IMG/VR virus record: IMGVR_UViG_3300023049_000005
Coordinates: 124,001-188,000 of that record
Reading direction: 5' to 3' (one strand)
DNA: 64,000 nucleotides
Positions 34,044-63,397 of the stretch are shown here, in pieces. The position numbers were made by a program, and so were the translations under genes. Numbering within the stretch: position 1 is the stretch's first letter; each line of letters starts with the position of its first letter. The notes beneath the pieces were generated by a model that had not been told where the DNA came from, did not search any database, and worked only from the letters and a program-made list of their open reading frames with translations.

Positions 34044-34048
34044 CAAAT

Positions 34049-34080
34049 AAAAAAACTAAGACTACCCTTAGTTTTTTTTT
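34049..34080 (+). terminator. Putative terminator after tRNA-Leu
   Basis: aaaaaactaag-actacc-cttagtttttttt (AT-rich, weak stem). Confidence 0.6.
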
Positions 34081-34095
34081 AATAATATTAAAAAA

Positions 34096-34800: not shown

Positions 34801-34801
34801 T

Positions 34802-34990: not shown

Positions 34991-34991
34991 T

Positions 34992-36275: not shown

Positions 36276-36276
36276 T

Positions 36277-37206: not shown

Positions 37207-37216
37207 TATATACTCT

Positions 37217-37696
37217 ATGAAGTATATTAAAGAACAGAACGAATTTGTTTTAGAAAATAAGATAACCGACTTTTTTAAGAAGTTTAATATTAGTAAGATC
37301 AAAGAAGATTTGAAAGAAAAATTAGACATAGAAGAAAGCGATTCTAAGAAAGAGATCTTCATTAAATTAACAAAGAACTTACATGATAAGTCATTTGAAT
37401 TTATAGCAAATCATCTTTCTACGATAGTTGGTGGTGCTTTGGGAGCATTGTTAGGCGATTTGATTTCTTATATCTTAACTATATTTGCAGATATAAATAC
37501 TGTTGAACAATTGTTATTAATGTTAGCAGGTATGATATTTATGTTATATCGATCTAAAACAGGTATTGATAAATATGGATTAGGTCTTAGGTCTTTTACT
37601 AAGGATGAACCAATTAAGAGTCCTGACTACGATGAACTTTCGGACAAAGATGAAATAAGCGGAGTTCATTTCATTTCTAAATTTGGGAAAGAATAA
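37217..37696 (+). CDS. Hypothetical protein with hydrophobic segments, possible internal virion protein
   Basis: Start MKYIKEQNEFVLE just after a TAATATATA late-type box. Confidence 0.65.
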   Translation: MKYIKEQNEFVLENKITDFFKKFNISKIKEDLKEKLDIEESDSKKEIFIKLTKNLHDKSFEFIANHLSTIVGGALGALLGDLISYILTIFADINTVEQLLLMLAGMIFMLYRSKTGIDKYGLGLRSFTKDEPIKSPDYDELSDKDEISGVHFISKFGKE

Positions 37697-37729
37697 ATAA
37701 ACTTTAATTCCTTTCCACATATAATAATT

Positions 37730-37939
37730 ATGAAAATAAAAGGTTATACGTATAGTAAAGATGATGGGTCTTTCTATATCAGAGGACATGAAGATACAAT
37801 GGAGGTTCTGATCAGAAACGACAAGGGCGAAACAAGTAAGCTAGAAATACCCTCTAATGACTTTAATAACATTGTACGAGAAGTCAATTCTCAGATCATA
37901 GAAAAAGAAAGAGAAAATAAAATCAAAAAAAACTTGTAG
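37730..37939 (+). CDS. Hypothetical protein
   Basis: 69 aa, ends ERENKIKKNL. Confidence 0.65.
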   Translation: MKIKGYTYSKDDGSFYIRGHEDTMEVLIRNDKGETSKLEIPSNDFNNIVREVNSQIIEKERENKIKKNL

Positions 37940-37963
37940 ATTAAATAAACTTTATTATATTTG
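37934..37963 (+). promoter_or_regulatory. Bacteroidota sigma70-type promoter for the tRNA cluster leader
   Basis: TTG (37934-36), 19-nt spacer, TATATTTG (37956-63). Confidence 0.65.
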
Positions 37964-38010
37964 CAAACTATAAGACAAAAAGGAACATAAAAACTTTTAT
38001 ATATACTGAA

Positions 38011-38112
38011 ATGAAAAACTTAAATTTAAATATTAATCTGAATAATCTTAACACGTGTGTCATGAACATTACCGTGAATAGGAATGTTGGGTCAAAATTT
38101 AAAGTAAAGTAA
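38011..38112 (+). CDS. Multivalent attenuator leader peptide MKNLNLNINLNNLNTCVMNITVNRNVGSKFKVK
   Basis: 33 codons, 10 Asn; residues 3-23 are exclusively N/L/I/T/C/V/M. Confidence 0.8.
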   Translation: MKNLNLNINLNNLNTCVMNITVNRNVGSKFKVK

Positions 38113-38168
38113 AGTAATTTTACACTAAGAAATTTTTAAAACCCAACTTCAAAAGAGTTGGGTTTTTT
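38086..38168 (+). promoter_or_regulatory. Transcription attenuator of the tRNA cluster
   Basis: gttgggt 38086-92 (+aaaattt 38094-100) pairs with acccaac 38141-47 (+aaatttt 38130-36), competing with terminator aaaacccaactt 38138-49 / gagttgggtttt 38155-66 plus T-run. Confidence 0.8.
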
Positions 38169-38180
38169 GTTTTTATATAT

Positions 38181-38252
38181 GGACTGTTAGCTCAGAGACA
38201 GAGCAGATGGCTGTTAACCATCAGGTCGGGATCTCGGAATTCCCACAGTCCT
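38181..38252 (+). tRNA. tRNA-Asn (GTT), atypical T-arm
   Basis: GGACTGT/ACAGTCC acceptor; GATGG-CT GTT AA-CCATC; T-loop CTCGGAA; U discriminator. Confidence 0.75.
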
Positions 38253-38260
38253 CAAAATAT

Positions 38261-38334
38261 TCCTCAGTAGCTCAGTTGGTTAGAGCGTCTGACTGTTAAT
38301 CAGAATGTCGTTGGTTCGAATCCAACCTGAGGAG
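38261..38334 (+). tRNA. tRNA-Asn (GTT), canonical
   Basis: TCCTCAG/CTGAGGA, TCTGA-CT GTT AA-TCAGA, G73. Confidence 0.95.
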
Positions 38335-38344
38335 CTAGATATTT

Positions 38345-38426
38345 GCCTTCGTGGTGGAATTGATAGACACGCTAGATTTAGAATCTAGTTCCGTGAGGAG
38401 TGCAGGTTCAAGTCCTGTCGGGGGTA
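38345..38426 (+). tRNA. tRNA-Leu (TAG)
   Basis: CTAGA-TT TAG AA-TCTAG, variable arm. Confidence 0.92.
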
Positions 38427-38433
38427 CAAATAT

Positions 38434-38520
38434 TCTTGGGTTGCCGTAGTGGTCGAACGGTCCTGACTGTTAATCAGGTGAGTTAATACTCCATCGTAGG
38501 TTCAAATCCTACCCCAAGAG
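38434..38520 (+). tRNA. tRNA-Asn (GTT) with long variable arm
   Basis: TCTTGGG/CCCAAGA, CCTGA-CT GTT AA-TCAGG, 17-nt variable region. Confidence 0.85.
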
Positions 38521-38523
38521 CAT

Positions 38524-38607
38524 AGAGAAGTGGTGAAATGGGTAAACACAGGAGGATCAAAACCTCTCGCCTTTAGGGGCTTGCGAGTTCGAGTCTCGCC
38601 TTCTCTA
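38524..38607 (+). tRNA. tRNA-Leu (CAA)
   Basis: AGAGAAG/CTTCTCT, GGAGG-AT CAA AA-CCTCT. Confidence 0.88.
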
Positions 38608-38612
38608 CATAT

Positions 38613-38693
38613 TGGTAGGTACTCAGCCCATCCTGATAAGATGGAGAACTGTAATTGGTGTTGAAAATGTGGGTTCAAATCCCACTCTACCAA
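38613..38693 (+). tRNA. D-arm-less tRNA-Ile (GAT)-like RNA
   Basis: TGGTAGG/TCTACCA acceptor, 8-nt D-replacement loop, CCATC-CT GAT AA-GATGG, 24-nt variable region, GTGGG-TTCAAAT-CCCAC. Confidence 0.65.
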
Positions 38694-38698
38694 CATAT

Positions 38699-38773
38699 AG
38701 TCTAGTAGCTCAGTTGGTTTAGAGCGCAACGCTGATACCGTTGAGGTCGTAGGTTCAAGTCCTACCTAGACTA
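38699..38773 (+). tRNA. tRNA-Ile (GAT)
   Basis: AGTCTAG/CTAGACT, CAACG-CT GAT AC-CGTTG. Confidence 0.92.
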
Positions 38774-38783
38774 CAGATAAAAT

Positions 38784-38868
38784 GCTAATGTCGCATAGTT
38801 GGTCGATTGCACTCCCCTTGTAAGGGAGAACTGAAAAGACATCGGGGGTTCGAATCCCTCCATTAGCT
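38784..38868 (+). tRNA. tRNA-Thr (TGT) with extended variable region
   Basis: GCTAATG/CATTAGC, CTCCC-CT TGT AA-GGGAG. Confidence 0.85.
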
Positions 38869-38876
38869 CAAAATAT

Positions 38877-38950
38877 AGCCTATTAGCTCAGGGGTTCAGA
38901 GCGTCTGTTTTACACGCAGAAAGTCGGTGGTTCGAATCCACCATAGGCTA
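38877..38950 (+). tRNA. tRNA-Val (TAC)
   Basis: AGCCTAT/ATAGGCT, TCTGT-TT TAC AC-GCAGA. Confidence 0.92.
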
Positions 38951-39057
38951 CTAATGGGGTAGGCACTTAAACGAGTACCTAAAAATAAAGCACCTATGGT
39001 GTGTTCGTTTAAGTTTGATAGGAATGTGGTGTTTGTCGTTCCTTGATAAGAAACTAT

Positions 39058-39131
39058 GCCGATGTAGCTCAGTTGGTCAGAGCAGTTGATTTGTAATCAA
39101 CGGGTCGGGGGTTCGAATCCCTCCATCGGCT
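39058..39131 (+). tRNA. tRNA-Thr (TGT), canonical
   Basis: GCCGATG/CATCGGC, GTTGA-TT TGT AA-TCAAC. Confidence 0.95.
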
Positions 39132-39139
39132 CAAATTAT

Positions 39140-39223
39140 ATCCCTATGGTGTAATTGGTGACATCCTTGTTTTACATGCAAGAGACGTGAAGTATAATCT
39201 TGGTTCGAGTCCAAGTAGGGATA
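39140..39223 (+). tRNA. tRNA-Val (TAC) with extended variable region
   Basis: ATCCCTA/TAGGGAT, CTTGT-TT TAC AT-GCAAG, 16-nt variable region. Confidence 0.82.
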
Positions 39224-39230
39224 CAAATAA

Positions 39231-39370
39231 GTGTGTGGTCTATATACCTTAATATGATCTAGATAGTATTAAGAAGAATTGGTTAGACAAAAACTGTGAA
39301 AAGTTATGTATATAGTCTAGGATAGATATATGAATTTAACAGGGCGTGAGTTCGATTCTCACCACATGCT
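39231..39370 (+). ncRNA. tRNA-like RNA (acceptor stem + T-arm, large non-tRNA core)
   Basis: GTGTGTG/CACATGC acceptor with G3:U70, GTGAG-TTCGATT-CTCAC T-arm, internal stems ctatatac/gtatatag and cttaatat/gtattaag. Confidence 0.55.
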
Positions 39371-39377
39371 CAAATAT

Positions 39378-39451
39378 TGCGAGGTAGCTTAGTGGTCTAA
39401 AGCACTTGAGTCATAACCAAGAGATCGAGGGTTCGAATCCCTCTCTCGCAA
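39378..39451 (+). tRNA. tRNA-Met (CAT)
   Basis: TGCGAGG/TCTCGCA, CAT anticodon, A.C mismatch closing the anticodon stem. Confidence 0.82.
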
Positions 39452-39464
39452 CTATATAGTATAT

Positions 39465-39550
39465 GTCGGTGTGACCTGAGTGGCGAAGGGTGTGGACTGC
39501 AAATCCATAGAACGAAAGTTCCATCGTAGGTTCGAGTCCTACCACCGACT
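39465..39550 (+). tRNA. tRNA-Cys (GCA) with long variable arm
   Basis: GTCGGTG/CACCGAC, GTGGA-CT GCA AA-TCCAT, gaac-gaaa-gttc variable stem, U73. Confidence 0.88.
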
Positions 39551-39620
39551 CTAAGTAGTATTATAGTACATTAAGTTATTTTTACTATATTTGTAAAAAT
39601 AAACCAACAAAACTTTCATT

Positions 39621-39893
39621 ATGTTATTTAATCCAAGTCTATTATATCCAACTATATTGTTGAGCCTAGTTTTTTTATCAATAGTTAAAATATTAGATAA
39701 AAAAGCCAATAAAGAAACTTTAACGGTCATATTATCTATGGTTAGTGGTTCTGTGTTTATGATGATTCTTACTATAAGTGTAGCTAGGTTCATTTTATTA
39801 AATGATATGTGGATAGTCCTAGTATATGGTATCGGAACAGGTATCAGTAAATATTTATATATCTATTTATGTAAAAAGTATAATATTAAATAA
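39621..39893 (+). CDS. Small membrane protein
   Basis: 90 aa, three hydrophobic segments. Confidence 0.65.
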   Translation: MLFNPSLLYPTILLSLVFLSIVKILDKKANKETLTVILSMVSGSVFMMILTISVARFILLNDMWIVLVYGIGTGISKYLYIYLCKKYNIK

Positions 39894-39929
39894 GTTTTAG
39901 TATATTTGTATTGATAAACAAATTAAAAC

Positions 39930-40003
39930 GGGCCCTTAGCTCAGTTGGTTAGAGCAACTGACTCATAATCAGTAGGTCGATGGTTCGAGTCCATCAGGGC
40001 CCA
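39930..40003 (+). tRNA. tRNA (CAT), likely Ile2 (lysidine) type
   Basis: GGGCCCT/AGGGCCC, ACTGA-CT CAT AA-TCAGT; own TATATTTG box at 39901. Confidence 0.9.
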
Positions 40004-40024
40004 CTTAACTAAAAACAAACAACT

Positions 40025-41058: not shown

Positions 41059-44000
41059 ATGACTCAAAGTGGGATGATAAAGGGGAAACAGATTAATATT
41101 GAAAGTATTAATTTAATACCAAACGAAAGCCCTTTAGCTTTAACTTCTTTTACCGTATCTACGGCATCTACGACATTTAGTGGAAAACAGATTATCAATT
41201 TAGAGTATTTAAACGATCAATTAGATTTAAAGATTGATATTACTCAAATAAACGATAATGCTACTTCTTCTACTTCTTCGTTATGGAGTGCTGATAAGAT
41301 ATATACTGAGATAACAGGATTAAGTCAATCAATCGATTCTGTTAGTATAAGTATATCAAATATACTGAATGATTTTATCACGGGATCTACTACAGGGTGG
41401 AGTTCTGAGAAAATTGATGAAGAATTAATTACATTAGAGAATAGTGTTAATATTAAAATTGATTCAGTAAGCATAAGTGTTGCTAATTTACTAAATGATT
41501 CAATCACAGGATCAACAACGGGTTGGTCTTCTGAGAAGATTAATAATGAGCTTGATTTAAAACTCGATGACAGCCAATTAAATGATGCAGCAGCCACGTC
41601 ATCTACTACATCATTGTGGAGTGTGAATAAGATATATACTGAATTACAAGCCATCGAAGCTAATGATTTACAAATAAATGACAATGCTACAAGTTCTACA
41701 ACTTCATTATGGAGTGCTAATAAGATATACACAGAGATACAAGGACTAAGTTCATCTGTTGATGCTAGAATTGATATAATAAATATCAGTGTATCTAATA
41801 TTGAAGGTGATATCATAGGTCTAAGTAATTCAATTGATAGTTTAAGTGTAAGTGTAGCCGATAACACAGCTAACATCGATTCTGTTAGTATAAGTGTTGC
41901 TAATATCTTAAACGATGGTATCACAGGATCTACAACAGGGTGGAGTTCTGAGAAAATAAACAACGAGTTAGATCTTAAATTAGATGATAGTCAGCTAAAT
42001 GATAGTATAATAGGTACTCTTTCTTTATGGAGTAGTGATAAGATAAGCAGTGAAATACAAGGGTTAAGTTCTTCTGTAAATACTAGAATAGACACCGTAA
42101 GCGCAAGTGTGATCGGTTTAAGTCAATCGGTTGATTCTCTAAGTCAAAGTGTAGCTACTAATACTACAAACATCGATTCAGTTAGTATCAGTGTAGCCAA
42201 CCTACTTAATGATAGTATCACAGGTTCAATAACAGGATGGAGTTCTGAGAAAATTGATGAAGAATTAATTACATTAGAGAATAATATTAATAGTCAATTA
42301 GATCTTAAATTAGATGACAGTCAGTTAAATGATACTATAGTGGGTACTGATTCTTTATGGAGTAGTGATAAGATAGATAGTGAGATACAAGGATTAAGTT
42401 CCTCTGTTAACACTAGAATAGATACCGTAAGTGCTAGTGTCATTGGATTAAGTCAATCAGTTGATTCGATAAGTATCAGTGTTACTAACAATACTAGTAC
42501 TATTACGGGATTAAGTCAATCTATTGATGTGATAAATGTTACTATTTCTAATATAGAAGGTGATATTACAGGATTAAGTCAGTCAATTGACTCAGTAAGT
42601 ATTAGTGTAGCTAACCTTCTTAATGACTCAATAACAGGTTCTACAACAGGTTGGAGTTCTGAGAAAATTGATGAAGAATTAATTACATTAGAGAATAATA
42701 TCAATAGTCAATTAGATCTTAAATTAGATGTTAGTCAATTAAATGATGCGGCTGCAACAAGCTCAACTACTTCATTGTGGAGTGTGAATAAGATTTATAC
42801 TGAATTACAAGCTATTGAAGCTAATGATCTACAAATAAATGATGCTGTTACTGCAACAGATAGTGTTTGGAGTTCTAATAAGATAGACAACGAACTAGAT
42901 CTTAAAGTAGACAAAACACAAATAGACGATGGTGGTACAGGTACTACATCGTTGTGGAGTGTGGATAGACTGTTGACTGAATTCGAATTAAAACTAGATG
43001 TTAGTCAATTAAATGATAGTATTATATCAGCAACGGGTCTATGGAGTAGTGATAAGATAAGCAGTGAAATACAAGGATTAAGTTCTTCTGTAAATACTAG
43101 AATAGACACCGTAAGTGCAAGTGTGATCGGTTTAAGTCAATCAGTAGATTCATTAAGTCAAAGTGTTGCTACTAATACTACAAACATCGATTCAGTTAGT
43201 ATCAGTGTAGCTAATATACTTAATGATAGTGTTACAGGTTCAACAACAGGATGGTCATCAAATAAGATAGATAGTGAGTTAGATTTTAAATTAGACGACA
43301 CACAATTAAACGATGTTGTTATAGGAACAAACTCATTATGGAGTTCTGATAAAATTAACAGTGAGGTACAAGGTTTGAGTTCTTCTGTGTATGCTGAAAT
43401 AGATTCTGTAAGTATAAGTGTCGCCAATCTATTAAACGATAGTATCACAGGATCAACAACAGGTTGGACATCACAAAAAATTGATAGCGAATTAGATCTT
43501 AAGCTAGATGTTAGTCAATTAAATGATGCGGCTGCAACAAGTTCTACTACCTCTCTTTGGAGTGTGAATAAAATTTACAACGAATTACAAGCTATTGATG
43601 CAGACCATCTACAAATAAATGACAATGCTACAAGCTCTACAACTTCTGTTTGGAGTGGTAATAAAGTTTATACTGAAATACAAGGATTAAGTTCTTCTGT
43701 ATATGCCGAAATAGATTCTGTTAGTATTAGTGTGTCTAATCTTCTTAATGATAACATTACGGGATCAACAACGGGTTGGTCTTCTGAGAAAATTGATGAA
43801 GAATTAATTACATTAGAGAATAATATTAATATTAAAATTGATTCAGTAAGCATAAGTGTTGCTAATTTACTAAATGACAGTATTACGGGATCAACAACAG
43901 GTTGGTCTTCTGAGAAGATTAATAGTGAACTTGATTTAAAACTAGATGATAGTCAATTAAATGATGTTGCTGCAACAAGCTCTACTACATCACTATGGAG

Positions 44001-47000
44001 CGTTAATAAAATTTATACTGAATTACAAGCTATTGATGCTGATCATCTACAAATAAACGATAATGTAACAAGCTCTACTACATCAGTATGGAGTGGTAAT
44101 AAAGTTTACACAGAGATACAAGGATTAAGTTCTTCTGTTAACACTAGAATTGATACAGTGAGCGCAAGTGTTATAGGATTAAGCCAATCAGTAGATTCAT
44201 TAAGTGTGAGTGTTTTTAATAACACCACTACTATAACAGGATTAAGTCAGTCAATTGATTCAGTAAGTATTAGTGTAGCTAATTTATTGAACGATTCAAT
44301 TACAGGATCTACTACAGGATGGTCTTCACAAAAGATAAACGATGAACTTGATCTTAAACTAGATGATAGTCAGTTAAATGATAGTGCTGCTACTAGTTCT
44401 ACTACTTCTTTGTGGAGCGTGAACAAGATCTATAATGAATTAGAATTAAAGCTTGATGATAGCCAAATCAATGACGCTGCTACTAGTTCTACTACCTCAT
44501 TATGGAGTAGTGATAAACTATATACTGAATTCGAAAACAAACTTGATACAAGTTTAACTAATAGTTACATTTTCTTAGGGTCACCACAAAATGTAGCAAC
44601 TCCTACCGAAACTGAAAAAATTTATATAAGCAGTGTTAGTGATGTACCATTAACAGAAGAATACTTATTCTTAAATGGGAACACAGTTACATTAGCTCAG
44701 AAAATAGAAAGTAATTTCCAAATTGCCGAAAGAACACAACAAGGTTGGATGGTTAGTAAAAGAAATGTCAATGAAGAAGTTATATTTGATATAGACGTAT
44801 CTTCTGCTTCTCTATTTAATACTGCATCAAACGAACTAGATATAAGTAATTACACAGGGGTTGATTCCTTAAATATCATAGATAGTACAACATCATCTCC
44901 TATATCAATAACTATATCTTCAATATCAGGTCTAGAAAGTGGTTATAATATAAACTTACGTTTAGAAGGACAGGGATCTATAACATTTGAAAACACATCT
45001 GCAACAGCAGCTAGTGTGGGGGATTTAATTTTATTTAATGATGAGAATAGAACGATAGTGGGTGGAACATATTCACAGGGTATAAATATTAAGAATAAAA
45101 ATGGTGTCAATTTAGAAATAGACCCACAATTTGATATTATAATAGACCAAGTAAATAGTAATATCAACGATAGTACAACATCGTCTACTACATCAGTATG
45201 GAGTGCTAACAAGATTTACACAGAATTACGAGCTATTGATGCTGATCATCTACAAATAAACGATAATGCAACAAGCTCTACTACATCAGTATGGAGTGGT
45301 AATAAAGTTTACACAGAGATACAAGGATTAAGTCAATCGATAGACAGTGTGAGTATTAGTGTAGCTAATATCTTAAATGATAGCATTACAGGATCTACTA
45401 CGGGATGGAGTTCACAAAAGATAAATAATGAACTCGACCTAAAACTAGACGACACTCAGTTAAATGATAGTATAATAGGTACTGATTCTTTATGGAGCAG
45501 TGATAAAATAAATAGTGAAGTGCAAGGTTTGAGTTCTTCTGTGAATTCTAGAATAGATACTGTAAGTGCTAGTGTAATAGATAACACAAACACTATAATA
45601 GGTCTAAGTAGCTCTGTTGATTCTTTAAGCCTGAGTGTATTTAATAACACAACCGATATTACAGGATTAAGCAATTCAATAGACATTATTAATGTTACTA
45701 TCTCAAATATAGAAGGTGATATTATAGGACTGAGCAATTCTATCGATAGTGTTAGTATTAGTGTGTCTAACTTATTAAATGATAGTATAACTGGTTCAAC
45801 AACAGGTTGGACTTCACAAAAGATTAACAATGAGTTAGATCTTAAATTGGATGATAGTCAATTAAACGATGCTGCTGCTACAAGTAGTACTACATCATTA
45901 TGGAGTGTGAATAAGATATATACTGAATTACAAGCCATTGATGCTAACGATCTTCAAATAAATGATAATATAACAGCTACGGATAGTGTTTGGAGTTCTA
46001 ATAAGATAGATAGCGAAATACAAGGATTAAGCTCATCTGTAAATACTAGAATAGACACAGTGAGCGCAAGTGTGATTGGTTTATCCCAATCAGTAGATTC
46101 ATTAAGTGTGAGTGTATTTAATAACACTACTGATATTACAGGATTAAGTCAATCTATTGATTCTGTTAGTATAAGTGTTGCTAATATCTTAAACGATGGT
46201 ATCACAGGATCTACAACAGGGTGGAGTTCTAATAAGATAGACAGTGAACTTGATCTTAAACTAGATGTTAGTCAATTAAATGATAGTATAATAGGTACTC
46301 TTTCTTTATGGAGTTCAGATAAGACTAACACAGAGATACAGGGGTTAAGTTCTTCTGTAAATACTAGAATAGACACCGTAAGCGCAAGTGTGATCGGTTT
46401 AAGCCAATCAGTAGATTCATTAAGTCAAAGTGTTGCTACTAATACTACAAACATCGATTCAGTAAGCATAAGTGTAGCTAATATCTTAAATGATAGCATC
46501 ACAGGTTCTACTACGGGATGGAGTTCTGAAAAGATAGATAACGAACTTGATCTTAAACTTGATGATAGTCAATTAAATGATGCTGCTGCGACGAGCAGTA
46601 CAACTTCGCTATGGAGTGTGAATAAGATTTATACCGAGCTACAAACTATTGATGCTGATCATTTACAAATAAATGATAACGCAACAAGCTCTACTACATC
46701 AGTATGGAGTGGCAACAAAGTTTATACAGAGATACAGGGATTAAGCTCATCGGTATACGCTGAGATTGATTCAGTAAGCATAAGTGTATCTAATCTTCTT
46801 AATGATAGTATTATAGGTTCAACAACAGGATGGACTTCACAGAAGATAAGTGATGAACTTGATCTTAAACTAGACGACACTCAAATCAATGACACGGCTA
46901 CTAGTTCAACTACTTCTTTATGGAGTAGTGATAAATTATATACAGAATTCCAAGGTAAATTGGGTACAGGATTAACCGAGAGTTATATATTCTTAGGTTC

Positions 47001-50000
47001 TGTGGGAAATATAGCTACTGAAACACCAACTGAAAAAATATATCCGATAAACGACAACGATGTTCTATTGACCGAAAGCTATTTGGCTCAATTTAGAAGT
47101 GATTTAAGTATCGGTCAAAAAGTAGAAACGGTTAATCAAATAGCCGAGAAGACTCCAAATGGTTGGTCAATTATAAAGAAAAACATTAACGAAGACTTAA
47201 TATATGATATTGATATATCTAATTCTAGTAATTATACTATTTCTTCAAATGAATTAAATATAAGTGATTACTTAGGTGTAGACACTTTAAATATTATAGA
47301 TGGTTCAACATCATCACCATTTTCTATAACAGTATCAACTATTGCAGGACTTTATGCTGATTTCAAAATTAGGTTTACTGTGGACACGGGTGGGGAAGTT
47401 ACTTTTGAACACACTGACTTGGCTACTGCGTCTTTTGATGATATAGTATTATCAAGTGGGGTAAATAAAACTATCACAGGAAGTACTTATAGTGATTATT
47501 TATCTATACAAAAAATAGATATAATAAATAAAGAAACGGATTTATCTTCTGATAGTATAACAAGTAATATAACAAATAATATTAGTAATAGTATCAATGA
47601 TGGTACTACTAGTTCTACTACATCACTTTGGAGTGCTAATAAGATATATACTGAATTACAAGCTATTGATGCTGATCATTTACAAATAATCGACAGTGTT
47701 ACTAGCTCTACTACTTCTGTTTGGAGTGGTAACAAAGTCTACACAGAGATACAAGGATTGAGTTCATCTATATTTGCTGAAATAGATTCAGTAAGTATTA
47801 GTGTGTCTAATCTTCTTAACGATAGTATTACGGGTTCTACAACAGGGTGGACATCACAAAAGATAAGCAATGAACTTGACCTTAAACTAGATGATACTCA
47901 AATCAATGACACAGCTACTAGTTCTACTACATCATTATGGAGTAGTAATAAATTATATACAGAATTTGAAAATAAATTAGATACAGGATTAACAGAAAGT
48001 TATATTTTCCTTGGTAATACAGCCAATGAATCAAGCAGAGTTCCAACATCTAAATTATACATAGATAACGTTAGTACAGATATACTAACAGAGACTTATG
48101 TGTCCAATAATTATTCCACTGCTTCAATAGGACAAAAGGTTGAGGCTAGTGACCAAATAGCAGAAAAGACACAAACCGATTGGATGATATCTAAGAAGAA
48201 TCACAACCAAGACATAGTTAAAGATCTAGATATATCTTCTGCTTCTTTATTTGCTACTTCTTCTAATCAAATGAACATTACACAATTCATTGGTGTGGAC
48301 ACTATAAACATAATTGATAGTAGCACTTCTTCTTTTTCTGCTACAATATCTACTATATTTGGATTGTTTGATAGATCTAGTGTTAAATTTAAAGTCACAA
48401 CAGGCGGTAGCGTAACATTTGAACATACAGACATAGCCTCTGCTTCTTTTTATGATATTAGCTTACTTAGTGGAGGAAATGTTACAATAATTGGAAGCAC
48501 ATATAGTGAGTTTTTAAGGTTACAAAAAATTAATAATATTAACATCGAAGAAGATAATGTGTCTTTAGGTGTCGGATCAGTAACTATAAATGATAGTTCT
48601 ACTAGTTCTACAACAGAAACATGGAGTGCCGATAAGATATACACAGAGATAACAGGTATATCTGCCTCTTTAAGCTCGGAGATAAACGATTCGATAACAG
48701 CAACAGATAGTACGTGGAGTAGTGATAAGATACAGACAGAAATAGATGATTCTAGTTTATATACATCAAACGGTACAATATCTTCTCCTAGGACAATATA
48801 TGGTAACGAAACACAATTAATATTAGATGGTGGTCAATTTGAGATTTGGGAAGGAATCGATACAACCGAGTATGGTGTTATTTTAAGAGAAAGTGGTGGT
48901 GGTATTAGAGGACAATTTGTATATGATGCGCTATCTAATACAACTAAACTCGAATTATTAAACGGAACAAGTAGTTTCTTCTTAGCTAATGGTGGAACTG
49001 TTAGTGTTAAAGGTGCATTCACTATTGATGATGACGATAATTCACATTATTTACAATTCTCAGCAGGATCGTTAACACAAAGTTTAACTTATGTTTTCCC
49101 TTCAGATTATGGAACGGATGGTCAAGCACTTATAACAGATGGTTCGGGAACATTAGATTGGATTACGGTTGCTACTAATTCACTTAGTATAAATGATAGT
49201 TCTACTAACTCTACTACTGAGGTATGGAGCGCAGATAAGACATATACAGAGATACAAGGTTTGAGTTCTTCTGTGTTTGGTGAAATTGATTCTGTTAGTA
49301 TTAGTGTATCTAATCTCCTTAATGATAGTATTACAGGTTCAACAACAGGTTGGACATCTCAAAAAATTAATAACGAACTAGATCTTAAACTAGATGATAC
49401 TCAGTTAAATGATGCGGCTGCTACTAGTTCTACTACATCTTTATGGAGTGTGAATAAGATTTATACAGAATTAGAATTAAAACTTGATGATAGTCAATTA
49501 AATGATGCTGTTACTGCAACAGATAGTGTTTGGAGTTCTAATAAGATAGACAACGAACTAGATCTTAAAGTAGACAAAACACAAATAGACGATGGTGGTA
49601 CAGGTACTACATCGTTGTGGAGTGTGGATAGACTGTTGACTGAATTCGAATTAAAACTAGATGTTAGTCAATTAAATGATAGTATTATATCAGCAACGGG
49701 TCTATGGAGTAGTGATAAGATAGATAACGAACTAGATCTTAAACTAGATGATACTCAGTTAAATGATGCGGCTGCTACTAGTTCTACTACTTCATTGTGG
49801 AGTGTGAATAAGATTTATACAGAACTAGATTTAAAACTAGACGATAGTCAGTTAAATGATACAATAACAACGACTAATTCATTATGGTCTTCAGACAAAA
49901 TAGATACCGAGTTAGACCTTAAGTTAGACGATACTCAGATTAATGATTCTGCTACAAATGTAAATATTTTATGGTCTTCTGATAAAATAGATACCGAGTT

Positions 50001-52905
50001 AGATTTAAAACTTGACGACACACAATTAGATGATGGAGTTACTGGTACAGATTCTTTCTGGTCATCAGTTAAGATTACTACTGAGTTAGATACTAAACTT
50101 GATGATAATCAGTTAAATGATAGTGCTACAAATTCAACAACTTCATTATGGAGTGCTGATAAAATTTATACAGAACTAGATTTAAAACTTGATGATAGTC
50201 AGTTAAATGATGGTGCAACCAGTTCTACAACATCAATGTGGAGTGCTAATAAGATACAGTTTGAACTAGACAGTTTGAGTTTTAGTAGTGTAGTTATAAA
50301 TGATTCAGTTACAGCAACAGATTCTGTATGGTCTTCTGATAAAATAGATACAGAACTAGATACTAAACTTGATGATACTCAGATTAATGATTCTGCTACA
50401 AATGTAAATATTTTATGGTCTTCTGATAAAATAGATACCGAGTTAGACCTTAAACTTGATGATACTCAATTAAATGACGGTGTTACAGGGACAGACTCTT
50501 TCTGGTCTTCTGTTAAGATTACTTCTGAATTAGACTCTAAACTAGATGATAGTCAATTAAATGATAGTGCTACAAATTCTTTAACATCAATGTGGAGTGC
50601 TGATAAAATTTATACTGAATTACAAGCTATTGAAGCTAATGATCTACAAATAATCGACAGTGTTACTAGCTCTACTACATCAGTATGGAGTGGTAATAAA
50701 GTTTATACAGAATTAGAATTAAAACTAGATGATAGTCAACTAAATGATAGTATAACTACATCTACTAACTTATGGAGTGCAGATAAAATACAAACAGAGA
50801 TAAACGATTCTAGTTTTTATTTAAATAATGGTACATTATCTACTAATAGAACAATTGATGCTAATGAATCGACATTAACATTGGAGAGAGGTCAATTTGA
50901 AATAACATCAGGAGCTGATACTGTAGATTATGGTTTAATAGTTAGACGAGATGTAGGATTGACAGCGTATGCTAAATTAGTCTTTGATGAGTTAAATGAC
51001 ACTGCTATATTAGATGTAGCAAGTCCAACTGGTAGTTTTTTCTCAGCGAGTAATGGTATAGTAAGCGTAAATGGAGAGTTTAGGATTTTAGACGATGATC
51101 AATCTAATTATTTAAGGTTCTCAGCAGGATCACTAACACAGAGTTTAATATATGCTTTCCCACCTAATTATGGTACAAATGGAGAAGTATTAATAACAAA
51201 TGGTTTAGGTGATCTATCATGGACTGCTTCTAGTGGGGGTGGTATATCATCATTAACTGAAAATACTATATTAATAGGTAATACTGTTAATGAACCACAA
51301 GAAAGAGTTGTAGAAAAAATTTATGTCGATAACTTATCTACTGAATTCTTATCTACCGAATACTTATATACGAATCACTATACTACTTCTATTTCACAAA
51401 AAATAGAATCTAAATATCAGGTTGCAGAAAGAACACAACAAGATTGGATGATTTCTAAAAAGAACCATAATCAAGATATAATATTTGATATAGATATATC
51501 CAATACTAATATTTACTCAACTAGTAGCCAAGCATTAGATATAGAAAATTATTTGGGTGCTGACGTATTAAATATAATTGATAGTTCTACGACTTCTTCT
51601 ATCGGTGTTACAATATCATCTATTATAGGTGTGTTAAATGATTATAGATTTGCTTTAAGATTAGACGGAGAAGGCACAATAAACTTTGATGATGTAGCAG
51701 CAGCGTCTGCTTCGGTTAACAGTATAGTACTAATAGGAACACAGAGCCAAATATTGACAGGTGGAACATACTCAGCAGATATAAAATTCAGAAGAGTTAA
51801 TGGAGTTAACGTACAAATTGATCCACAAGTGAGTGTTGTATCAGTAGGTACTAGTGGTGGTGGAGGTTCTAATATTAATGATGCTGTTACTGCAACAGAA
51901 TCTACATGGTCTTCTACTAAAATATCCTCTGAGATTACTAGTGGTAATACAAATATATACACTGCTGACGGGACATTAACATCAGATAGAACGATATCAG
52001 GGGGAGCTAATGCTATAATTTTAGCTAATGGTGATTTTAATATACAACCATCGGGTGTAACTAATATTGGGTTTGGAATAAAAAACGTATCTGCTAATAC
52101 TTTAGCTGAGTTCATATTTGATTCGTCAAATGGTGGAGCAAAATTAGATTTGAAAAATTCATCACTAGATAGTTACTTCTCAGCAGATAATGGTGTAGTT
52201 AGTGTTGCGGCAGCAGCAGAATTTAGAATATTTGATGATAATAATTCACATTATTTAAGACTATCGGCAGGATCATTAACAGCAAATAGAACTTACGTTT
52301 TTCCATCAGATTATGGGACAGCAGGGGGAATAATGACATCAGATGGTGCAGGTAATTTATCTTGGTCAGTTGTTGGTGCAGGAATCGATTCATCAGGAGG
52401 TACTGTGTCACTTGAATCAGATCAAAGAGGAAACATATTCCAAATAGGAAGGGATACTAATGACTATATCTTGGTTAATACCACTGTTATCGATTTCAGA
52501 TTAGATGGTAACTTAGATATGAGGTTAGAAAATGATGGTGATCTTCATGTTGATGGTGATGTATTTGCTTTCTCTACTACAACATCTGATGAAAGCCTTA
52601 AAGATAATATCGAAACAATCGAAAGTGCATCAGAAAAAATATCAAAACTTCGTGGTGTAGAATTTATTTGGAATGGTACATCAAGAAAAGGACAGAAGGA
52701 TATTGGTCTTATAGCACAGGAAGTTGAAAAAGTTATACCTGAAGTAGTTTATGATAAAACTTTAACTACAGGAGAATACGCAGATAATCCTAAAGATGTT
52801 AAGACAGTAGATTATGCAAAACTTGTTGCTCTGCTTATTGAATCTAATAAAGAACTACAAAACAGAGTTTCTGATTTAGAAGAAGAAATAAAAAAGAAAA
52901 AATAA
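41059..52905 (+). CDS. Giant repeat-rich tail fibre with C-terminal peptidase S74 (intramolecular chaperone) domain
   Basis: 3948 aa; dozens of (I/L)ND....T..(L/G)WS..KI..E repeats; C-term SDESLKDNI...KLRGVEF.W...GLIAQEVEKVIPEVV...VDYAKLVALLIE. Confidence 0.8.
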   Translation: MTQSGMIKGKQINIESINLIPNESPLALTSFTVSTASTTFSGKQIINLEYLNDQLDLKIDITQINDNATSSTSSLWSADKIYTEITGLSQSIDSVSISISNILNDFITGSTTGWSSEKIDEELITLENSVNIKIDSVSISVANLLNDSITGSTTGWSSEKINNELDLKLDDSQLNDAAATSSTTSLWSVNKIYTELQAIEANDLQINDNATSSTTSLWSANKIYTEIQGLSSSVDARIDIINISVSNIEGDIIGLSNSIDSLSVSVADNTANIDSVSISVANILNDGITGSTTGWSSEKINNELDLKLDDSQLNDSIIGTLSLWSSDKISSEIQGLSSSVNTRIDTVSASVIGLSQSVDSLSQSVATNTTNIDSVSISVANLLNDSITGSITGWSSEKIDEELITLENNINSQLDLKLDDSQLNDTIVGTDSLWSSDKIDSEIQGLSSSVNTRIDTVSASVIGLSQSVDSISISVTNNTSTITGLSQSIDVINVTISNIEGDITGLSQSIDSVSISVANLLNDSITGSTTGWSSEKIDEELITLENNINSQLDLKLDVSQLNDAAATSSTTSLWSVNKIYTELQAIEANDLQINDAVTATDSVWSSNKIDNELDLKVDKTQIDDGGTGTTSLWSVDRLLTEFELKLDVSQLNDSIISATGLWSSDKISSEIQGLSSSVNTRIDTVSASVIGLSQSVDSLSQSVATNTTNIDSVSISVANILNDSVTGSTTGWSSNKIDSELDFKLDDTQLNDVVIGTNSLWSSDKINSEVQGLSSSVYAEIDSVSISVANLLNDSITGSTTGWTSQKIDSELDLKLDVSQLNDAAATSSTTSLWSVNKIYNELQAIDADHLQINDNATSSTTSVWSGNKVYTEIQGLSSSVYAEIDSVSISVSNLLNDNITGSTTGWSSEKIDEELITLENNINIKIDSVSISVANLLNDSITGSTTGWSSEKINSELDLKLDDSQLNDVAATSSTTSLWSVNKIYTELQAIDADHLQINDNVTSSTTSVWSGNKVYTEIQGLSSSVNTRIDTVSASVIGLSQSVDSLSVSVFNNTTTITGLSQSIDSVSISVANLLNDSITGSTTGWSSQKINDELDLKLDDSQLNDSAATSSTTSLWSVNKIYNELELKLDDSQINDAATSSTTSLWSSDKLYTEFENKLDTSLTNSYIFLGSPQNVATPTETEKIYISSVSDVPLTEEYLFLNGNTVTLAQKIESNFQIAERTQQGWMVSKRNVNEEVIFDIDVSSASLFNTASNELDISNYTGVDSLNIIDSTTSSPISITISSISGLESGYNINLRLEGQGSITFENTSATAASVGDLILFNDENRTIVGGTYSQGINIKNKNGVNLEIDPQFDIIIDQVNSNINDSTTSSTTSVWSANKIYTELRAIDADHLQINDNATSSTTSVWSGNKVYTEIQGLSQSIDSVSISVANILNDSITGSTTGWSSQKINNELDLKLDDTQLNDSIIGTDSLWSSDKINSEVQGLSSSVNSRIDTVSASVIDNTNTIIGLSSSVDSLSLSVFNNTTDITGLSNSIDIINVTISNIEGDIIGLSNSIDSVSISVSNLLNDSITGSTTGWTSQKINNELDLKLDDSQLNDAAATSSTTSLWSVNKIYTELQAIDANDLQINDNITATDSVWSSNKIDSEIQGLSSSVNTRIDTVSASVIGLSQSVDSLSVSVFNNTTDITGLSQSIDSVSISVANILNDGITGSTTGWSSNKIDSELDLKLDVSQLNDSIIGTLSLWSSDKTNTEIQGLSSSVNTRIDTVSASVIGLSQSVDSLSQSVATNTTNIDSVSISVANILNDSITGSTTGWSSEKIDNELDLKLDDSQLNDAAATSSTTSLWSVNKIYTELQTIDADHLQINDNATSSTTSVWSGNKVYTEIQGLSSSVYAEIDSVSISVSNLLNDSIIGSTTGWTSQKISDELDLKLDDTQINDTATSSTTSLWSSDKLYTEFQGKLGTGLTESYIFLGSVGNIATETPTEKIYPINDNDVLLTESYLAQFRSDLSIGQKVETVNQIAEKTPNGWSIIKKNINEDLIYDIDISNSSNYTISSNELNISDYLGVDTLNIIDGSTSSPFSITVSTIAGLYADFKIRFTVDTGGEVTFEHTDLATASFDDIVLSSGVNKTITGSTYSDYLSIQKIDIINKETDLSSDSITSNITNNISNSINDGTTSSTTSLWSANKIYTELQAIDADHLQIIDSVTSSTTSVWSGNKVYTEIQGLSSSIFAEIDSVSISVSNLLNDSITGSTTGWTSQKISNELDLKLDDTQINDTATSSTTSLWSSNKLYTEFENKLDTGLTESYIFLGNTANESSRVPTSKLYIDNVSTDILTETYVSNNYSTASIGQKVEASDQIAEKTQTDWMISKKNHNQDIVKDLDISSASLFATSSNQMNITQFIGVDTINIIDSSTSSFSATISTIFGLFDRSSVKFKVTTGGSVTFEHTDIASASFYDISLLSGGNVTIIGSTYSEFLRLQKINNINIEEDNVSLGVGSVTINDSSTSSTTETWSADKIYTEITGISASLSSEINDSITATDSTWSSDKIQTEIDDSSLYTSNGTISSPRTIYGNETQLILDGGQFEIWEGIDTTEYGVILRESGGGIRGQFVYDALSNTTKLELLNGTSSFFLANGGTVSVKGAFTIDDDDNSHYLQFSAGSLTQSLTYVFPSDYGTDGQALITDGSGTLDWITVATNSLSINDSSTNSTTEVWSADKTYTEIQGLSSSVFGEIDSVSISVSNLLNDSITGSTTGWTSQKINNELDLKLDDTQLNDAAATSSTTSLWSVNKIYTELELKLDDSQLNDAVTATDSVWSSNKIDNELDLKVDKTQIDDGGTGTTSLWSVDRLLTEFELKLDVSQLNDSIISATGLWSSDKIDNELDLKLDDTQLNDAAATSSTTSLWSVNKIYTELDLKLDDSQLNDTITTTNSLWSSDKIDTELDLKLDDTQINDSATNVNILWSSDKIDTELDLKLDDTQLDDGVTGTDSFWSSVKITTELDTKLDDNQLNDSATNSTTSLWSADKIYTELDLKLDDSQLNDGATSSTTSMWSANKIQFELDSLSFSSVVINDSVTATDSVWSSDKIDTELDTKLDDTQINDSATNVNILWSSDKIDTELDLKLDDTQLNDGVTGTDSFWSSVKITSELDSKLDDSQLNDSATNSLTSMWSADKIYTELQAIEANDLQIIDSVTSSTTSVWSGNKVYTELELKLDDSQLNDSITTSTNLWSADKIQTEINDSSFYLNNGTLSTNRTIDANESTLTLERGQFEITSGADTVDYGLIVRRDVGLTAYAKLVFDELNDTAILDVASPTGSFFSASNGIVSVNGEFRILDDDQSNYLRFSAGSLTQSLIYAFPPNYGTNGEVLITNGLGDLSWTASSGGGISSLTENTILIGNTVNEPQERVVEKIYVDNLSTEFLSTEYLYTNHYTTSISQKIESKYQVAERTQQDWMISKKNHNQDIIFDIDISNTNIYSTSSQALDIENYLGADVLNIIDSSTTSSIGVTISSIIGVLNDYRFALRLDGEGTINFDDVAAASASVNSIVLIGTQSQILTGGTYSADIKFRRVNGVNVQIDPQVSVVSVGTSGGGGSNINDAVTATESTWSSTKISSEITSGNTNIYTADGTLTSDRTISGGANAIILANGDFNIQPSGVTNIGFGIKNVSANTLAEFIFDSSNGGAKLDLKNSSLDSYFSADNGVVSVAAAAEFRIFDDNNSHYLRLSAGSLTANRTYVFPSDYGTAGGIMTSDGAGNLSWSVVGAGIDSSGGTVSLESDQRGNIFQIGRDTNDYILVNTTVIDFRLDGNLDMRLENDGDLHVDGDVFAFSTTTSDESLKDNIETIESASEKISKLRGVEFIWNGTSRKGQKDIGLIAQEVEKVIPEVVYDKTLTTGEYADNPKDVKTVDYAKLVALLIESNKELQNRVSDLEEEIKKKK

Positions 52906-60840: not shown

Positions 60841-60876
60841 AGTAACAACAAAAGTAAGAAAAATTATATATACTAT

Positions 60877-61374
60877 ATGGCAAATGAGAAAAAATTAGTA
60901 TGGTCTACTGAGAATGTTAAGGAAGCTGAACAAAAATTAGACGAAGGTATAATACTTAAAGGTTATGAAATACCGTTTTTTGATAAAATCCCAGGTCTGA
61001 AGAAGTCGAATCTAGCATTTAAAGTAACAGAAGAAGAACTTAATGAATACATGAAATGTAAAGTAGATATCAGATACTTTATAGCTAATTACTGTTATAT
61101 TAAGTCAGAGGATGGTGATTATCATTTAATGAAGCTAAGAGATTATCAACATGATGTAATTGACTTATATGATAAGAATCCATTGAGTATACTTATGGCA
61201 TCGAGACAAATTGGTAAGTGTGTTGATCCATTAACAGAAGTTAAAATCATCGATAAGACTGATAACAATTATATTATGCCTTTTTTTAGATTATTATATA
61301 AATCTAAAGTATCTAAAACAATATATGATCACATAAAATATGTGTTATATTCATTATTATATAAACTATCTTAG
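60877..61374 (+). CDS. Terminase large subunit N-fragment fused to a split-intein N-part
   Basis: gp17-like 'EYMKC...YFI.NYCYI...LRDYQ...SRQIGK' then intein block A 'CVDPLTEVKI' from 61219; stop after 51 aa. Confidence 0.8.
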   Translation: MANEKKLVWSTENVKEAEQKLDEGIILKGYEIPFFDKIPGLKKSNLAFKVTEEELNEYMKCKVDIRYFIANYCYIKSEDGDYHLMKLRDYQHDVIDLYDKNPLSILMASRQIGKCVDPLTEVKIIDKTDNNYIMPFFRLLYKSKVSKTIYDHIKYVLYSLLYKLS

Positions 61375-61551
61375 TTTTTCGTTCTCAAAACCACCCTTAG
61401 TATATCCACTTACACCAATAACCCTATATTTATTGGGATATAGTTCGTCCAAACGTTCAATAGCCTTAGTTATATTTTCCGCTTCTACAAAGAACTGAGA
61501 GTTTTGGTCTTTCTTATTGTTCGGCATAAGAGCTAATATCAATTTTTCCAT
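61366..61551 (-). CDS. Hypothetical small protein
   Basis: 61 aa; TATATTTG box immediately upstream. Confidence 0.6.
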   Translation of the reverse strand: MEKLILALMPNNKKDQNSQFFVEAENITKAIERLDELYPNKYRVIGVSGYTKGGFENEKLR

Positions 61552-61588: not shown

Positions 61589-61669
61589 TTATATTAATAT
61601 TTTAGGAAAAATAGGTATTATCGTGGAAAAATAGGTAATTATATTAACATTTGGTGAAAAGTAGGTAAT
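61589..61669. repeat. Short direct repeats in divergent intergenic region
   Basis: GGAAAAATAGGTA at 61605 and 61625, GAAAAGTAGGTA at 61656; TTATATTAA(T/C)ATTT twice. Confidence 0.6.
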
Positions 61670-61708
61670 ATGTATTAAACAATTTCATTACTTTCTAATA
61701 TATTGTAC

Positions 61709-63397
61709 ATGATAATAAAAGAACTTTCAATCAGAAACTTTAAATCGTTTGGTAATAACCAACAATCTATATCCTTAAAAGACGAAGGAAACCTAATCCT
61801 TTTATCGGGAGTTAATGGCTCAGGTAAATCTAGTTTAATGGATAGCTTCGATTATGTATTTTATAATACAGTTAAGGGTAAGAAAGCAAAGAAAGTAAAA
61901 CTATCTTCTTTACCTAATAGAATAAATGGCAATCTGGAAAACACAGTTGAATTCCTATCTGATGATGGGACAGAGGTTAAAATAGTTAGAGGATATAAGC
62001 CTAATAAACTAGAGCTATACGAAAATGGAGTATTGAACCAAAGAGCAGGTAAGAGTAAATTAGAGGCTTTAATAGAGAACTATATCGGTATCGACTATGA
62101 AACATTTAAATCATTCATATCGATGTCTATAAATGATTTCAAGAACTTCATTGCACTTTCTAGTGAGGATAAAAGATTATTATTAGATAAGTTATTTAAC
62201 TTAGAGGTGATTAACGTACTTAATAAAATATTAAATAAACTAATATCAGATAATAAGAAAGATCTAGAAGTTACTGATAGAGAAATTAATATCATTGAAG
62301 AAAATATAGATAATATTAAAGGTAGTATTGATAAAGTTAAAAGCTCTAAAGAAGAAGATCTGTCTAATAAAATAGGATTACTTACTGAGAAAATGGAGTC
62401 ACTTAAAGATCCATTCGTGGAAGTAAAAGAAAAACTAAAGAAGATCGAAGAAAAGAAAAGAACTATTAAAGAACAAGTAGATGGCGAAAGAACTACTTTA
62501 ATAGAAACTAAAAGTGAGATCAAACAAATAGATAGACAGTTAGAACTTTTTGATAACGATCAATGTCCTACTTGTCAAACCGATTTATCAGGAGATTTCC
62601 ACCAAGGACTAAAGAAAACTTATTTAGAGAAGAAAGAAAAATTTGAGGAAATAACCAAAGAAGTTACATCTAAGGGAAAGAAGTTGAATGAGCAGGTTAA
62701 GAAGTTAGATGAATTAGCACAGAAAGGTAATACGAAATACAATGAAATGAATTCTGATCTTAAAAGCCTTAGTAGAGATAAACAAGAACTTTTAAGGAAG
62801 CAAGGAGAAGAAAAAGATAATGATTTAGAAGAATTCTATGAATCAGTTAAAAAATTAGAAGCTAAAAGAGAAGACAGAAAAGATAAGAAAAGTGAATATG
62901 AAGATAAGACTACTTATCATAAGTATCTAAAATCAGTATTTTCTGATAACGGTGTGAAGAAATCTATTATCAATAATATAGTAGAGCCTATTAATCATTA
63001 TATTCAAGATAATATCCAAAAGATGCACTTACCTTTTGAAGTAAACCTAGACGATAGCTTTACTGCAGAGATAACTTCCTTTGGTGAAGAAATCGATACT
63101 GAAACTCTTTCTACGGGTGAAACTAGAAAGATTAATATCGCTATTATGGTAGCTTATCTAAGGTTGATCAGAACGAAAAGACAGATTAATATCTTATTCT
63201 TAGATGAAGTGTTTTCTTCAATTGATGTAGAAAGTATCGATAGTGTGATTGCATTGTTAAGAGATCTAGCTAATGAAAGTAAGATTAATATATTCTTAGT
63301 ACACCACTCTACATTAGATTCTAATAAATTTGACAAAGTGATTAAGGTAGAAAAGAATGTCTTTACTACTTTAGAAGAAGTTGATATATCTTCTTAG
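61709..63397 (+). CDS. Recombination endonuclease subunit (T4 gp46 / SbcC-Rad50 ATPase)
   Basis: Walker A GVNGSGKS, zinc hook CPTC, signature LSTGE, Walker B LFLDE. Confidence 0.92.
   Translation: MIIKELSIRNFKSFGNNQQSISLKDEGNLILLSGVNGSGKSSLMDSFDYVFYNTVKGKKAKKVKLSSLPNRINGNLENTVEFLSDDGTEVKIVRGYKPNKLELYENGVLNQRAGKSKLEALIENYIGIDYETFKSFISMSINDFKNFIALSSEDKRLLLDKLFNLEVINVLNKILNKLISDNKKDLEVTDREINIIEENIDNIKGSIDKVKSSKEEDLSNKIGLLTEKMESLKDPFVEVKEKLKKIEEKKRTIKEQVDGERTTLIETKSEIKQIDRQLELFDNDQCPTCQTDLSGDFHQGLKKTYLEKKEKFEEITKEVTSKGKKLNEQVKKLDELAQKGNTKYNEMNSDLKSLSRDKQELLRKQGEEKDNDLEEFYESVKKLEAKREDRKDKKSEYEDKTTYHKYLKSVFSDNGVKKSIINNIVEPINHYIQDNIQKMHLPFEVNLDDSFTAEITSFGEEIDTETLSTGETRKINIAIMVAYLRLIRTKRQINILFLDEVFSSIDVESIDSVIALLRDLANESKINIFLVHHSTLDSNKFDKVIKVEKNVFTTLEEVDISS

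Follow-up and report, generated by a model that had tools for sequence, protein, structure and literature searches.

The analysis was conducted on a stretch of 64,000 nucleotides, referred to here as the window, which covers bases 124,001-188,000 of an IMG/VR virus record (IMGVR_UViG_3300023049_000005). The record is linear, 270,756 bp (270.8 kb) long and 29.8% G+C, and it is estimated to be 89% complete. One open reading frame (ORF) of the window, called the N-half here, begins as a phage large terminase (TerL) and ends as the N-terminal fragment of an intein (IntN), as seen in Table 1. Residues 37-114 of the N-half aligned with residues 89-166 of T4 gp17 (E=1.7e-11), and the alignment ended at SRQLGK of gp17. 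A terminase large subunit family of PHROGs, phrog_5989, matched residues 38-115 (E=1.2e-18). A Pfam search of the N-half found nothing, and it was recognized only by PHROGs and by gp17 sequences from the PDB. The codon of Cys115, TGT at 61219-61221, directly follows SRQIGK, and the 51 residues from Cys115 to the stop make up IntN. These results agree with a preliminary description of this DNA, which had placed a gp17-like N-terminus split at Walker A, the first intein residue at 61219, and a short IntN running to the stop. It had also named a small antisense ORF and gp46 as the next genes, and both were found.

Table 1. Coordinates of the N-half, its parts and neighbors in the window, and of the C-half in the genome.
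Feature	Position	Strand	Remarks
Promoter-like TATATATA box	60865-60872	+	Ends 4 nt before the N-half ATG
N-half ORF	60877-61374	+	165 aa
TerL N-extein	60877-61218	+	114 aa; C-terminal end is the Walker A residues SRQIGK
IntN core	61219-61311	+	aa 115-145: Cys1, block A strand, first helix
IntN tail helix	61312-61371	+	About aa 146-165; not in AceL-TerL or Cat
N-half stop codon TAG	61372-61374	+	Site where relatives carry a homing-endonuclease-like gene
61-aa antisense ORF	61366-61551	-	Conserved; bounds the N-half; neighbor, outside the intein
SbcC/gp46-like gene	61703-63397		Downstream of the N-half and of the 61-aa antisense ORF
C-half ORF	Genome 115,281-117,518 (L002:10281-12518)		745 aa; outside the window

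The 61-aa antisense ORF, for which Pfam and PHROGs gave no family match, overlaps at its end with the N-half stop codon. Homologues of this ORF adjoin the N-half in one related phage sequence, L005, and in another, L009, a 53-aa minus-strand ORF lies in a stretch that is DNA-homologous to the same region. Upstream of the N-half, on the minus strand, are a 243-aa ORF and a gene for a T4 Rnl1-like RNA ligase. The sequence GAAAARTAGGTA is present in three direct copies within 62 bp (window 61606-61667), upstream of the gp46/SbcC-like gene, and no further copies were found anywhere in the 270-kb genome. L009 has two copies at the corresponding place (11802-11863), and the repeats may be a candidate regulatory binding site.

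No gene for the C-terminal intein fragment (IntC) and the rest of TerL was present in the window, as the preliminary description had stated. It had proposed that the rest of the genome be searched for an ORF with intein blocks B, F and G, an HN end, a Thr or Ser, and the remainder of TerL. One such ORF was found, the C-half, in which SHN is followed by Thr. It is located 69 kb upstream of the N-half in the same genome, so the halves are unlinked, as had been claimed. The C-half is the sole Terminase_6N match in the record and consists of a 146-aa IntC followed by 599 extein residues in all, the first being Thr+1; these make up the rest of the TerL ATPase and the nuclease. The C-extein aligns to gp17 from residue 168 on, Walker B included, and therefore its residue 1 corresponds to T167. 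When each extein was aligned to gp17 on its own, rather than as an assembled spliced TerL, the two abutted without overlap or gap at K166|T167 of T4 gp17, inside Walker A. Residues 10-120 of an uninterrupted relative map to the N-half, and its residues 177-766 map to the C-half.

The C-half is directly followed by a UVR-domain ORF and a tail sheath gene of 1269 aa, in keeping with the T4 order of gene 17 and then gene 18. The C-half has kept the T4 position, and the N-half, which is distant from the packaging genes, is the piece that moved. The tail sheath gene (L002:13007-16816; genome 118,007-121,816) is about twice the length of the 631-aa sheath genes seen in Ackermannviridae, and its matches to sheath families were confined to the C-terminal 380 aa.

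Both halves belong to large sets of similar proteins. A word-based protein search found at least 60 N-half homologues (proteins or clusters) of 104-207 aa, most of them similar along almost all of the N-half, and a protein search found at least 138 proteins that start with a homologous IntC and continue with TerL. The subfamily medians are 54 aa for IntN and 147 aa for IntC. Two GenBank hits that reached query residues 126-127, from Vibrio VAP7 and Klebsiella Bestiario, were considered as split cases and rejected; they are ordinary uninterrupted TerLs without an intein.

One possible explanation is that the phage is defective or incompletely assembled and the N-half a decaying remnant, with the functional terminase elsewhere or missing. 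The location of the N-half apart from the packaging genes and a linear record estimated at 89% completeness would be compatible with this. However, the C-half lacks the Walker A Gly-Lys and has no working ATPase alone, and no TerL-like sequence besides the two halves was found in the record (an estimated 89% of the genome), including the intact TerL that the preliminary description had named as a possibility. The N-half ORF is also intact, its equal-length homologues occur in at least 60 clusters, and its Cys1 is invariant. A dead remnant is highly unlikely because the C-half has no P-loop Gly-Lys and because the length and motifs of the N-half are conserved.

Next, the intein motifs were compared across the subfamily. 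Cys115 occupies position 1 of a class 1 intein, and Cys1 was invariant in 22/22 aligned N-halves. IntN holds only block A, the first helix and the tail helix; blocks B, F and G are carried by IntC. The block B His, residue 83 of IntC, was invariant across 97 sequences, and three positions before it there is an invariant Ala where Thr is usual (TxxH). Block G has an SHN end, with the penultimate His and terminal Asn, and then Thr+1. The sequence YTNGILSHN followed by T/S was near-universal in the 119 C-half relatives, where the +1 residue was Thr in 111, Ser in 8 and Cys in none. For the HINT fold, IntC matched sequences of the solved inteins CatC, gp41-1 and VidaL; the best match was 6dsl_B, "Consensus engineered intein CatC" (E=3.2e-5, IntC residues 27-145). 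IntN alone had no match among PDB sequences. The Pfam model Intein_splicing (PF14890) gave no match in the whole genome at E<=0.1, and this blank says little about other inteins in the genome because the model misses the TerL intein too. Two relatives have non-canonical intein C-termini, SSQ with a terminal Gln in L019 (L019:4661-6469, LR756500.1) and SLN in P0163. Judging from these residues, both may splice differently or not at all.

Taken together, we give a probability of roughly 85% to the reading that the large terminase of this phage is made from two unlinked genes whose products are joined by split-intein trans-splicing. Two separately transcribed genes would be co-expressed, one for the N-half (114 extein residues and the 51-aa IntN) and one for the C-half (the 146-aa IntC and 599 extein residues). 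The N-half would supply the Walker A Gly-Lys, and the C-half, which starts with the Walker A Thr, would contribute Walker B and the nuclease. When the fragments associate, the HINT fold, nearly whole in IntC, would be completed by the IntN strand, and the IntN tail helix would pair antiparallel with a head helix of IntC. Class 1 splicing with Cys1, the block B His, the penultimate His, the terminal Asn and Thr+1 would then give a 713-aa TerL with an intact P-loop.

Another possible explanation is that the halves associate through the intein fragments without splicing, giving a non-covalent two-chain TerL in which the intein is a dimerization module. The altered C-terminal motifs of L019 and P0163 hint that splicing is not kept everywhere, the block B Ala in place of the usual Thr points the same way, and the predicted interface described below is large, with about 135 contacts. 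However, Cys1, the block B His, the His-Asn terminus and Thr+1 are all canonical in this genome, and the same residues recur in the relatives, with Cys1 in every one of the 22 N-halves and SHN then T/S in nearly all 119 C-half relatives. Judging by Walker A of T4 gp17, ATP binding would probably be blocked if about 197 aa of intein stayed unspliced in the P-loop. Non-covalent complementation is disfavored because every catalytic residue is kept, and we consider it unlikely.

Both halves have a promoter-like box upstream. The TATATATA box was found within 45 nt upstream of 32/277 ORFs compared to 1.7 expected. The C-half has one too (L002:10269-10276), ending 4-5 nt before its ATG, the same spacing as at the N-half. 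Equal spacing before both halves was also seen in L009/L014, G001, L005 and L010, which makes five phages with this one. This suggests, at the level of sequence, that the halves have separate promoters belonging to one class. An ATATATA-type box, of which the boxes before the two halves are examples, was strongly enriched upstream of ORFs genome-wide, with AATATATA in 73/277 upstream regions compared to 3.1 expected. Its distance from the ATG is usually about 12 or about 30 nt, and mRNAs of the 12-nt class would be nearly leaderless. TATATTTG and ATATTTGT were enriched upstream of ORFs as well, and we take them to be similar to the TAnnTTTG -7 box of Bacteroidota. The nearest TerL relatives in culture have Tenacibaculum, Flavobacterium, Chryseobacterium and Sphingomonas as hosts, which makes a Bacteroidota host plausible.

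The halves are arranged in several ways among the relatives. L019, an unannotated 462-kb uncultured phage in GenBank, has the N-half, a 366-aa ORF and the C-half back to back. A single 510-aa minus-strand ORF that matches phrog_3339 "homing endonuclease" lies between the halves in L012, and L005 has a shortened 190-aa version and a 119-aa ORF there. In L010 the halves are convergent, with the C-half 3.9 kb off on the other strand. They are unlinked in L011, where the C-half is absent within 10 kb, and 22 kb apart on opposite strands in G001, where each is 57% identical to its counterpart here. The closest relative, from sample SRR24314822, has the layout of this genome on two contigs; its N-half (L009) is between RNA-ligase-like and gp46-like genes with the C-half absent within 10 kb, and its C-half (L014) is beside the sheath gene on the separate contig.

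Since the contig comes from a metagenome and some relatives have adjacent halves, the separation could be thought an assembly artifact, a chimeric or mis-joined contig whose halves are truly adjacent; the preliminary description had itself raised an assembly error. The layout of the independent SRR24314822 assembly speaks against this, with the N-half in the same place and the C-half by the sheath gene on another contig, as do the distance and opposite strands of the halves in G001 and the collinearity of the DNA flanking the N-half with L009 at 83-91% identity. An artifact is extremely unlikely because independent assemblies show the unlinked layout too.

In L009, L010, L011 and L019, a 322-366-aa ORF directly follows the N-half. 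It belongs to phrog_22677 in L009-L011, and the L019 ORF was assigned by sequence similarity. The matches of this ORF were weak, with Ros/MucR zinc-finger at the N-terminus and MTES_1575/DUF559 at the C-terminus, all below Pfam cut-offs. They are suggestive of a Vsr-like free-standing endonuclease as in Dassa et al. No endonuclease-like ORF was found at the N-half of this genome, either in the ORF listing or in the DNA comparison with L009. Two DUF7487/phrog_3339 "homing endonuclease" paralogues of about 540-574 aa are present elsewhere in the genome (L002:16923-18647, which is genome 121,923-123,647, and genome 101,831-103,453). They are 43% identical by way of L005, and one of them is situated a short way downstream of the tail sheath gene. 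The inter-half ORF in L012 is from this family too.

Changes between the uninterrupted and split states appear to be frequent. On a tree of C-exteins, which left out the N-halves, at least five changes of state are required to account for the seven uninterrupted rows; one of the rows, P0192, has a very long branch. P0193, which is uninterrupted, has split P0180 as its sister, and uninterrupted P0169 clusters with two split relatives, P0168 and P0176. In both groups, the loop of the uninterrupted protein aligns with the place where one gene ends and the next begins. Therefore, the split state seems to flip easily. In the history that we propose, the starting point would be an uninterrupted intein that had a helical hairpin following block A. 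Its break would have come in the loop of this hairpin, where the free-standing homing-endonuclease-like gene is found in relatives. This lineage would then have ended up without the endonuclease-like gene, and a rearrangement would have moved the N-half 69 kb away.

The two fragments differ in how closely they resemble those of the SRR24314822 relative. The N-extein is 96.5% identical, the C-extein 94.7% and IntC 84.9%, compared to 47.1% for IntN. DNA identity with L009 is 91% up to 61221, the end of the Cys1 codon, undetectable over 61222-61366, and 83% from 61367. The IntN core here resembles that of G001, which likewise has no endonuclease-like gene, and the IntN of the SRR24314822 relative resembles those of endonuclease-carrying alleles. 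These patterns would be explained if recombination transfers IntN along with the endonuclease-like gene, one crossover falling in the conserved Walker A codons. If so, IntC would tolerate different IntN cores, provided that the tail helix is kept. The values of 47% for IntN versus 85% for IntC and 95-96% for the exteins also question whether the present IntN and IntC are optimally matched.

Both fragments carry a segment at the split site that lengthens them. Compared to CatC, IntC is longer by about 31 residues at its N-terminus, and the C-terminus of IntN is extended by about 20. Both additions are conserved. Across N-halves, Y158 of the IntN tail is invariant and K154 almost invariant, and the IntC head (residues 1-23) is identical to that of the closest relative save one Arg-to-Lys change. 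Six uninterrupted relatives (P0160, P0162, P0165, P0169, P0179 and P0193) have both segments joined via a short loop; P0192 is uninterrupted and is without both.

The uninterrupted form was modeled with AlphaFold2 using P0162 and a 97-row alignment, which gave a mean pLDDT of 85. A joint alignment of N-halves and full-length proteins (A2) had been discarded because MAFFT misplaced the N-halves, and an alignment without N-halves (A3) was used. The model places the intein at C119-N323, with helices at 134-141 and 147-164, a short turn, a helix at 177-195 and a beta-rich core; the block pLDDT was 85-95 across the helices. The IntN tail helix corresponds to helix 147-164. The first strand (116-130) was poorly modeled, and its low confidence arises because A3 leaves six or seven sequences there. 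Foldseek matched the model to T4 gp17 and to mini-inteins (6rix, 6bs8, 1am2). The contig of P0162 also has a neighboring NrdD gene with an intein and a LAGLIDADG domain (L013:8542-11955, precomputed Pfam hits), and therefore that phage hosts at least two inteins.

The pair in this genome was also predicted as a complex. The ipSAE was 0.85, 0.86 and 0.85 in three runs compared to 0.02 for the best of 3 controls, although this score may partly reflect likeness to known structures because split-intein complexes have been solved. In calibration, the ipSAE mark was reached by 51/78 solved complexes and 2/108 mismatched pairs. The runs had at least 90% of contacts in common, and the partner pLDDT was 85. 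As a measure of model confidence, the score supports binding of IntN and IntC to each other. The predicted interface has two parts. In one, N-half residues 111-127 lie against IntC 39-47, 77-84, 123-128 and 137-147, so that the strand inserts in the core. In the other, IntN 143-165 is predicted to run antiparallel on IntC 2-20, and the pairs with the lowest error include 13:157, 9:161, 16:154 and 20:150.

These extra helices may define a subfamily with a built-in two-helix zipper formed by the IntN tail and the IntC head. The zipper would be a covalent hairpin after block A in the uninterrupted relatives, and the homing-endonuclease-like gene would land in its loop. We hold this view tentatively, with the odds slightly against it. 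If this view is correct, the fragments owe much of their affinity for each other to the zipper, which would explain the five or more uninterrupted/split interchanges on the extein tree, the drift of the halves to unlinked loci, and the service of one IntC to IntN cores that differ widely (47% identity, next to exteins with 95%). A naturally occurring atypical split intein with an affinity clamp and N-fragments that can be exchanged would be a novelty.

The pair was compared to known systems. Cat is a consensus of the atypically split inteins AceL-TerL and GOS-TerL (PMC11766414), and all three trans-splice (PMC11766414, PMC13014065); the GOS and AceL fragments are reported to cross-react (PMC11766414). 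IntN and IntC are 25 and 104 aa in AceL-TerL, 37 and 115-122 aa in GOS-TerL, and 30 and 104 aa in Cat-TerL (PMC11766414, PMC13014065), compared to 51 and 146 aa here. As in these inteins, the host protein is a phage large terminase, and the split follows block A and the first helix, close to the N-terminus, with blocks B, F and G on IntC. Cys1 is the first nucleophile in AceL and Cat too, and IntC is similar in sequence to CatC (E=3.2e-5). Since IntC matches the consensus of the AceL-TerL/GOS-TerL family, the TerL kind of split intein is already known. Unlike these inteins, each fragment here has one extra helix, and residues 1 to about 31 of IntC have no CatC counterpart. The published ones have Cys+1 (PMC11766414), whereas Thr is found here and Thr/Ser in the subfamily. 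The preliminary description was right to call IntN short compared to canonical split inteins, but at 51 aa it exceeds every published natural atypical one, which range from 15 to 37 aa (PMC13014065).

Split genes of this kind have been known since 2009 (Dassa et al., PMC2677866), and one terminase locus with a 122-aa IntC and an unusual break point was listed there. The order of N-half, homing-endonuclease-like ORF and C-half in L019, L012 and L005 (with the shortened ORF) is like that of the fractured genes of Dassa et al., and the intervening ORFs of the relatives recall Vsr-like endonucleases through weak Vsr/DUF559/MTES_1575-type matches. This genome is unlike them in having no endonuclease-like gene there and a distance of 69 kb between the halves. 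The insertion point between the invariant Walker A Lys and the nucleophilic Thr is shared with the mycobacteriophage TerL P-loop inteins (Kelley et al. 2016) and is the classic P-loop intein site (PMC5050341). The mycobacteriophage inteins are uninterrupted and in a terminase_1-type TerL (PMC5050341), whereas the one here is split and in a terminase_6 (T4 gp17-type) TerL.

The two halves thus form a real naturally split intein of the atypical type. The novelty claimed in the preliminary description holds for the pair and the variant and does not extend to the principle, which is old. The fresh elements are the conserved helix pair, an IntN length beyond the published range, the Thr+1 chemistry, and a comparative series from uninterrupted to unlinked. 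As far as we have seen, the helix extensions are unreported for published TerL inteins, though there may be an earlier mention. The split intein of cyanobacterial DnaE is a precedent of another sort, in which an essential enzyme encoded by two unlinked genes is rebuilt by protein trans-splicing. The TerL pair is similar in the essential enzyme and the unlinked genes. DnaE differs in its canonical split site (long IntN, short IntC), its cellular host and its extein.

Atypically split inteins are tools for protein labeling and semisynthesis, and few natural ones have been characterized. The pair described here belongs to a large uncharacterized subfamily with Cys1/Thr+1 chemistry, and its extra conserved helices may act as a natural affinity clamp. 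If they do, low concentrations could suffice for splicing, and weaker split inteins could be fitted with the helices. In terms of phage biology, the arrangements, which run from uninterrupted through broken with an endonuclease-like gene and inverted to unlinked, illustrate how a selfish element can permanently break an essential gene, whose pieces are then released from linkage by trans-splicing. The case is also a warning for annotation, as a 165-aa "hypothetical protein" and a TerL without the P-loop lysine are two halves of one enzyme.

The window has other features of note. There are two giant ORFs, one of 3948 aa at 41059-52905 (+) and one of 2199 aa at 9127-15726 (-); the latter had no match in PHROGs at E<=1e-5. 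A cluster of 13 tRNA genes (Leu x3, Asn x2, Thr x2, Val x2, Met x2, Ile, Cys) is present at 33959-40004, several of them duplicated, with lengths that alternate between about 75 and about 85 nt.
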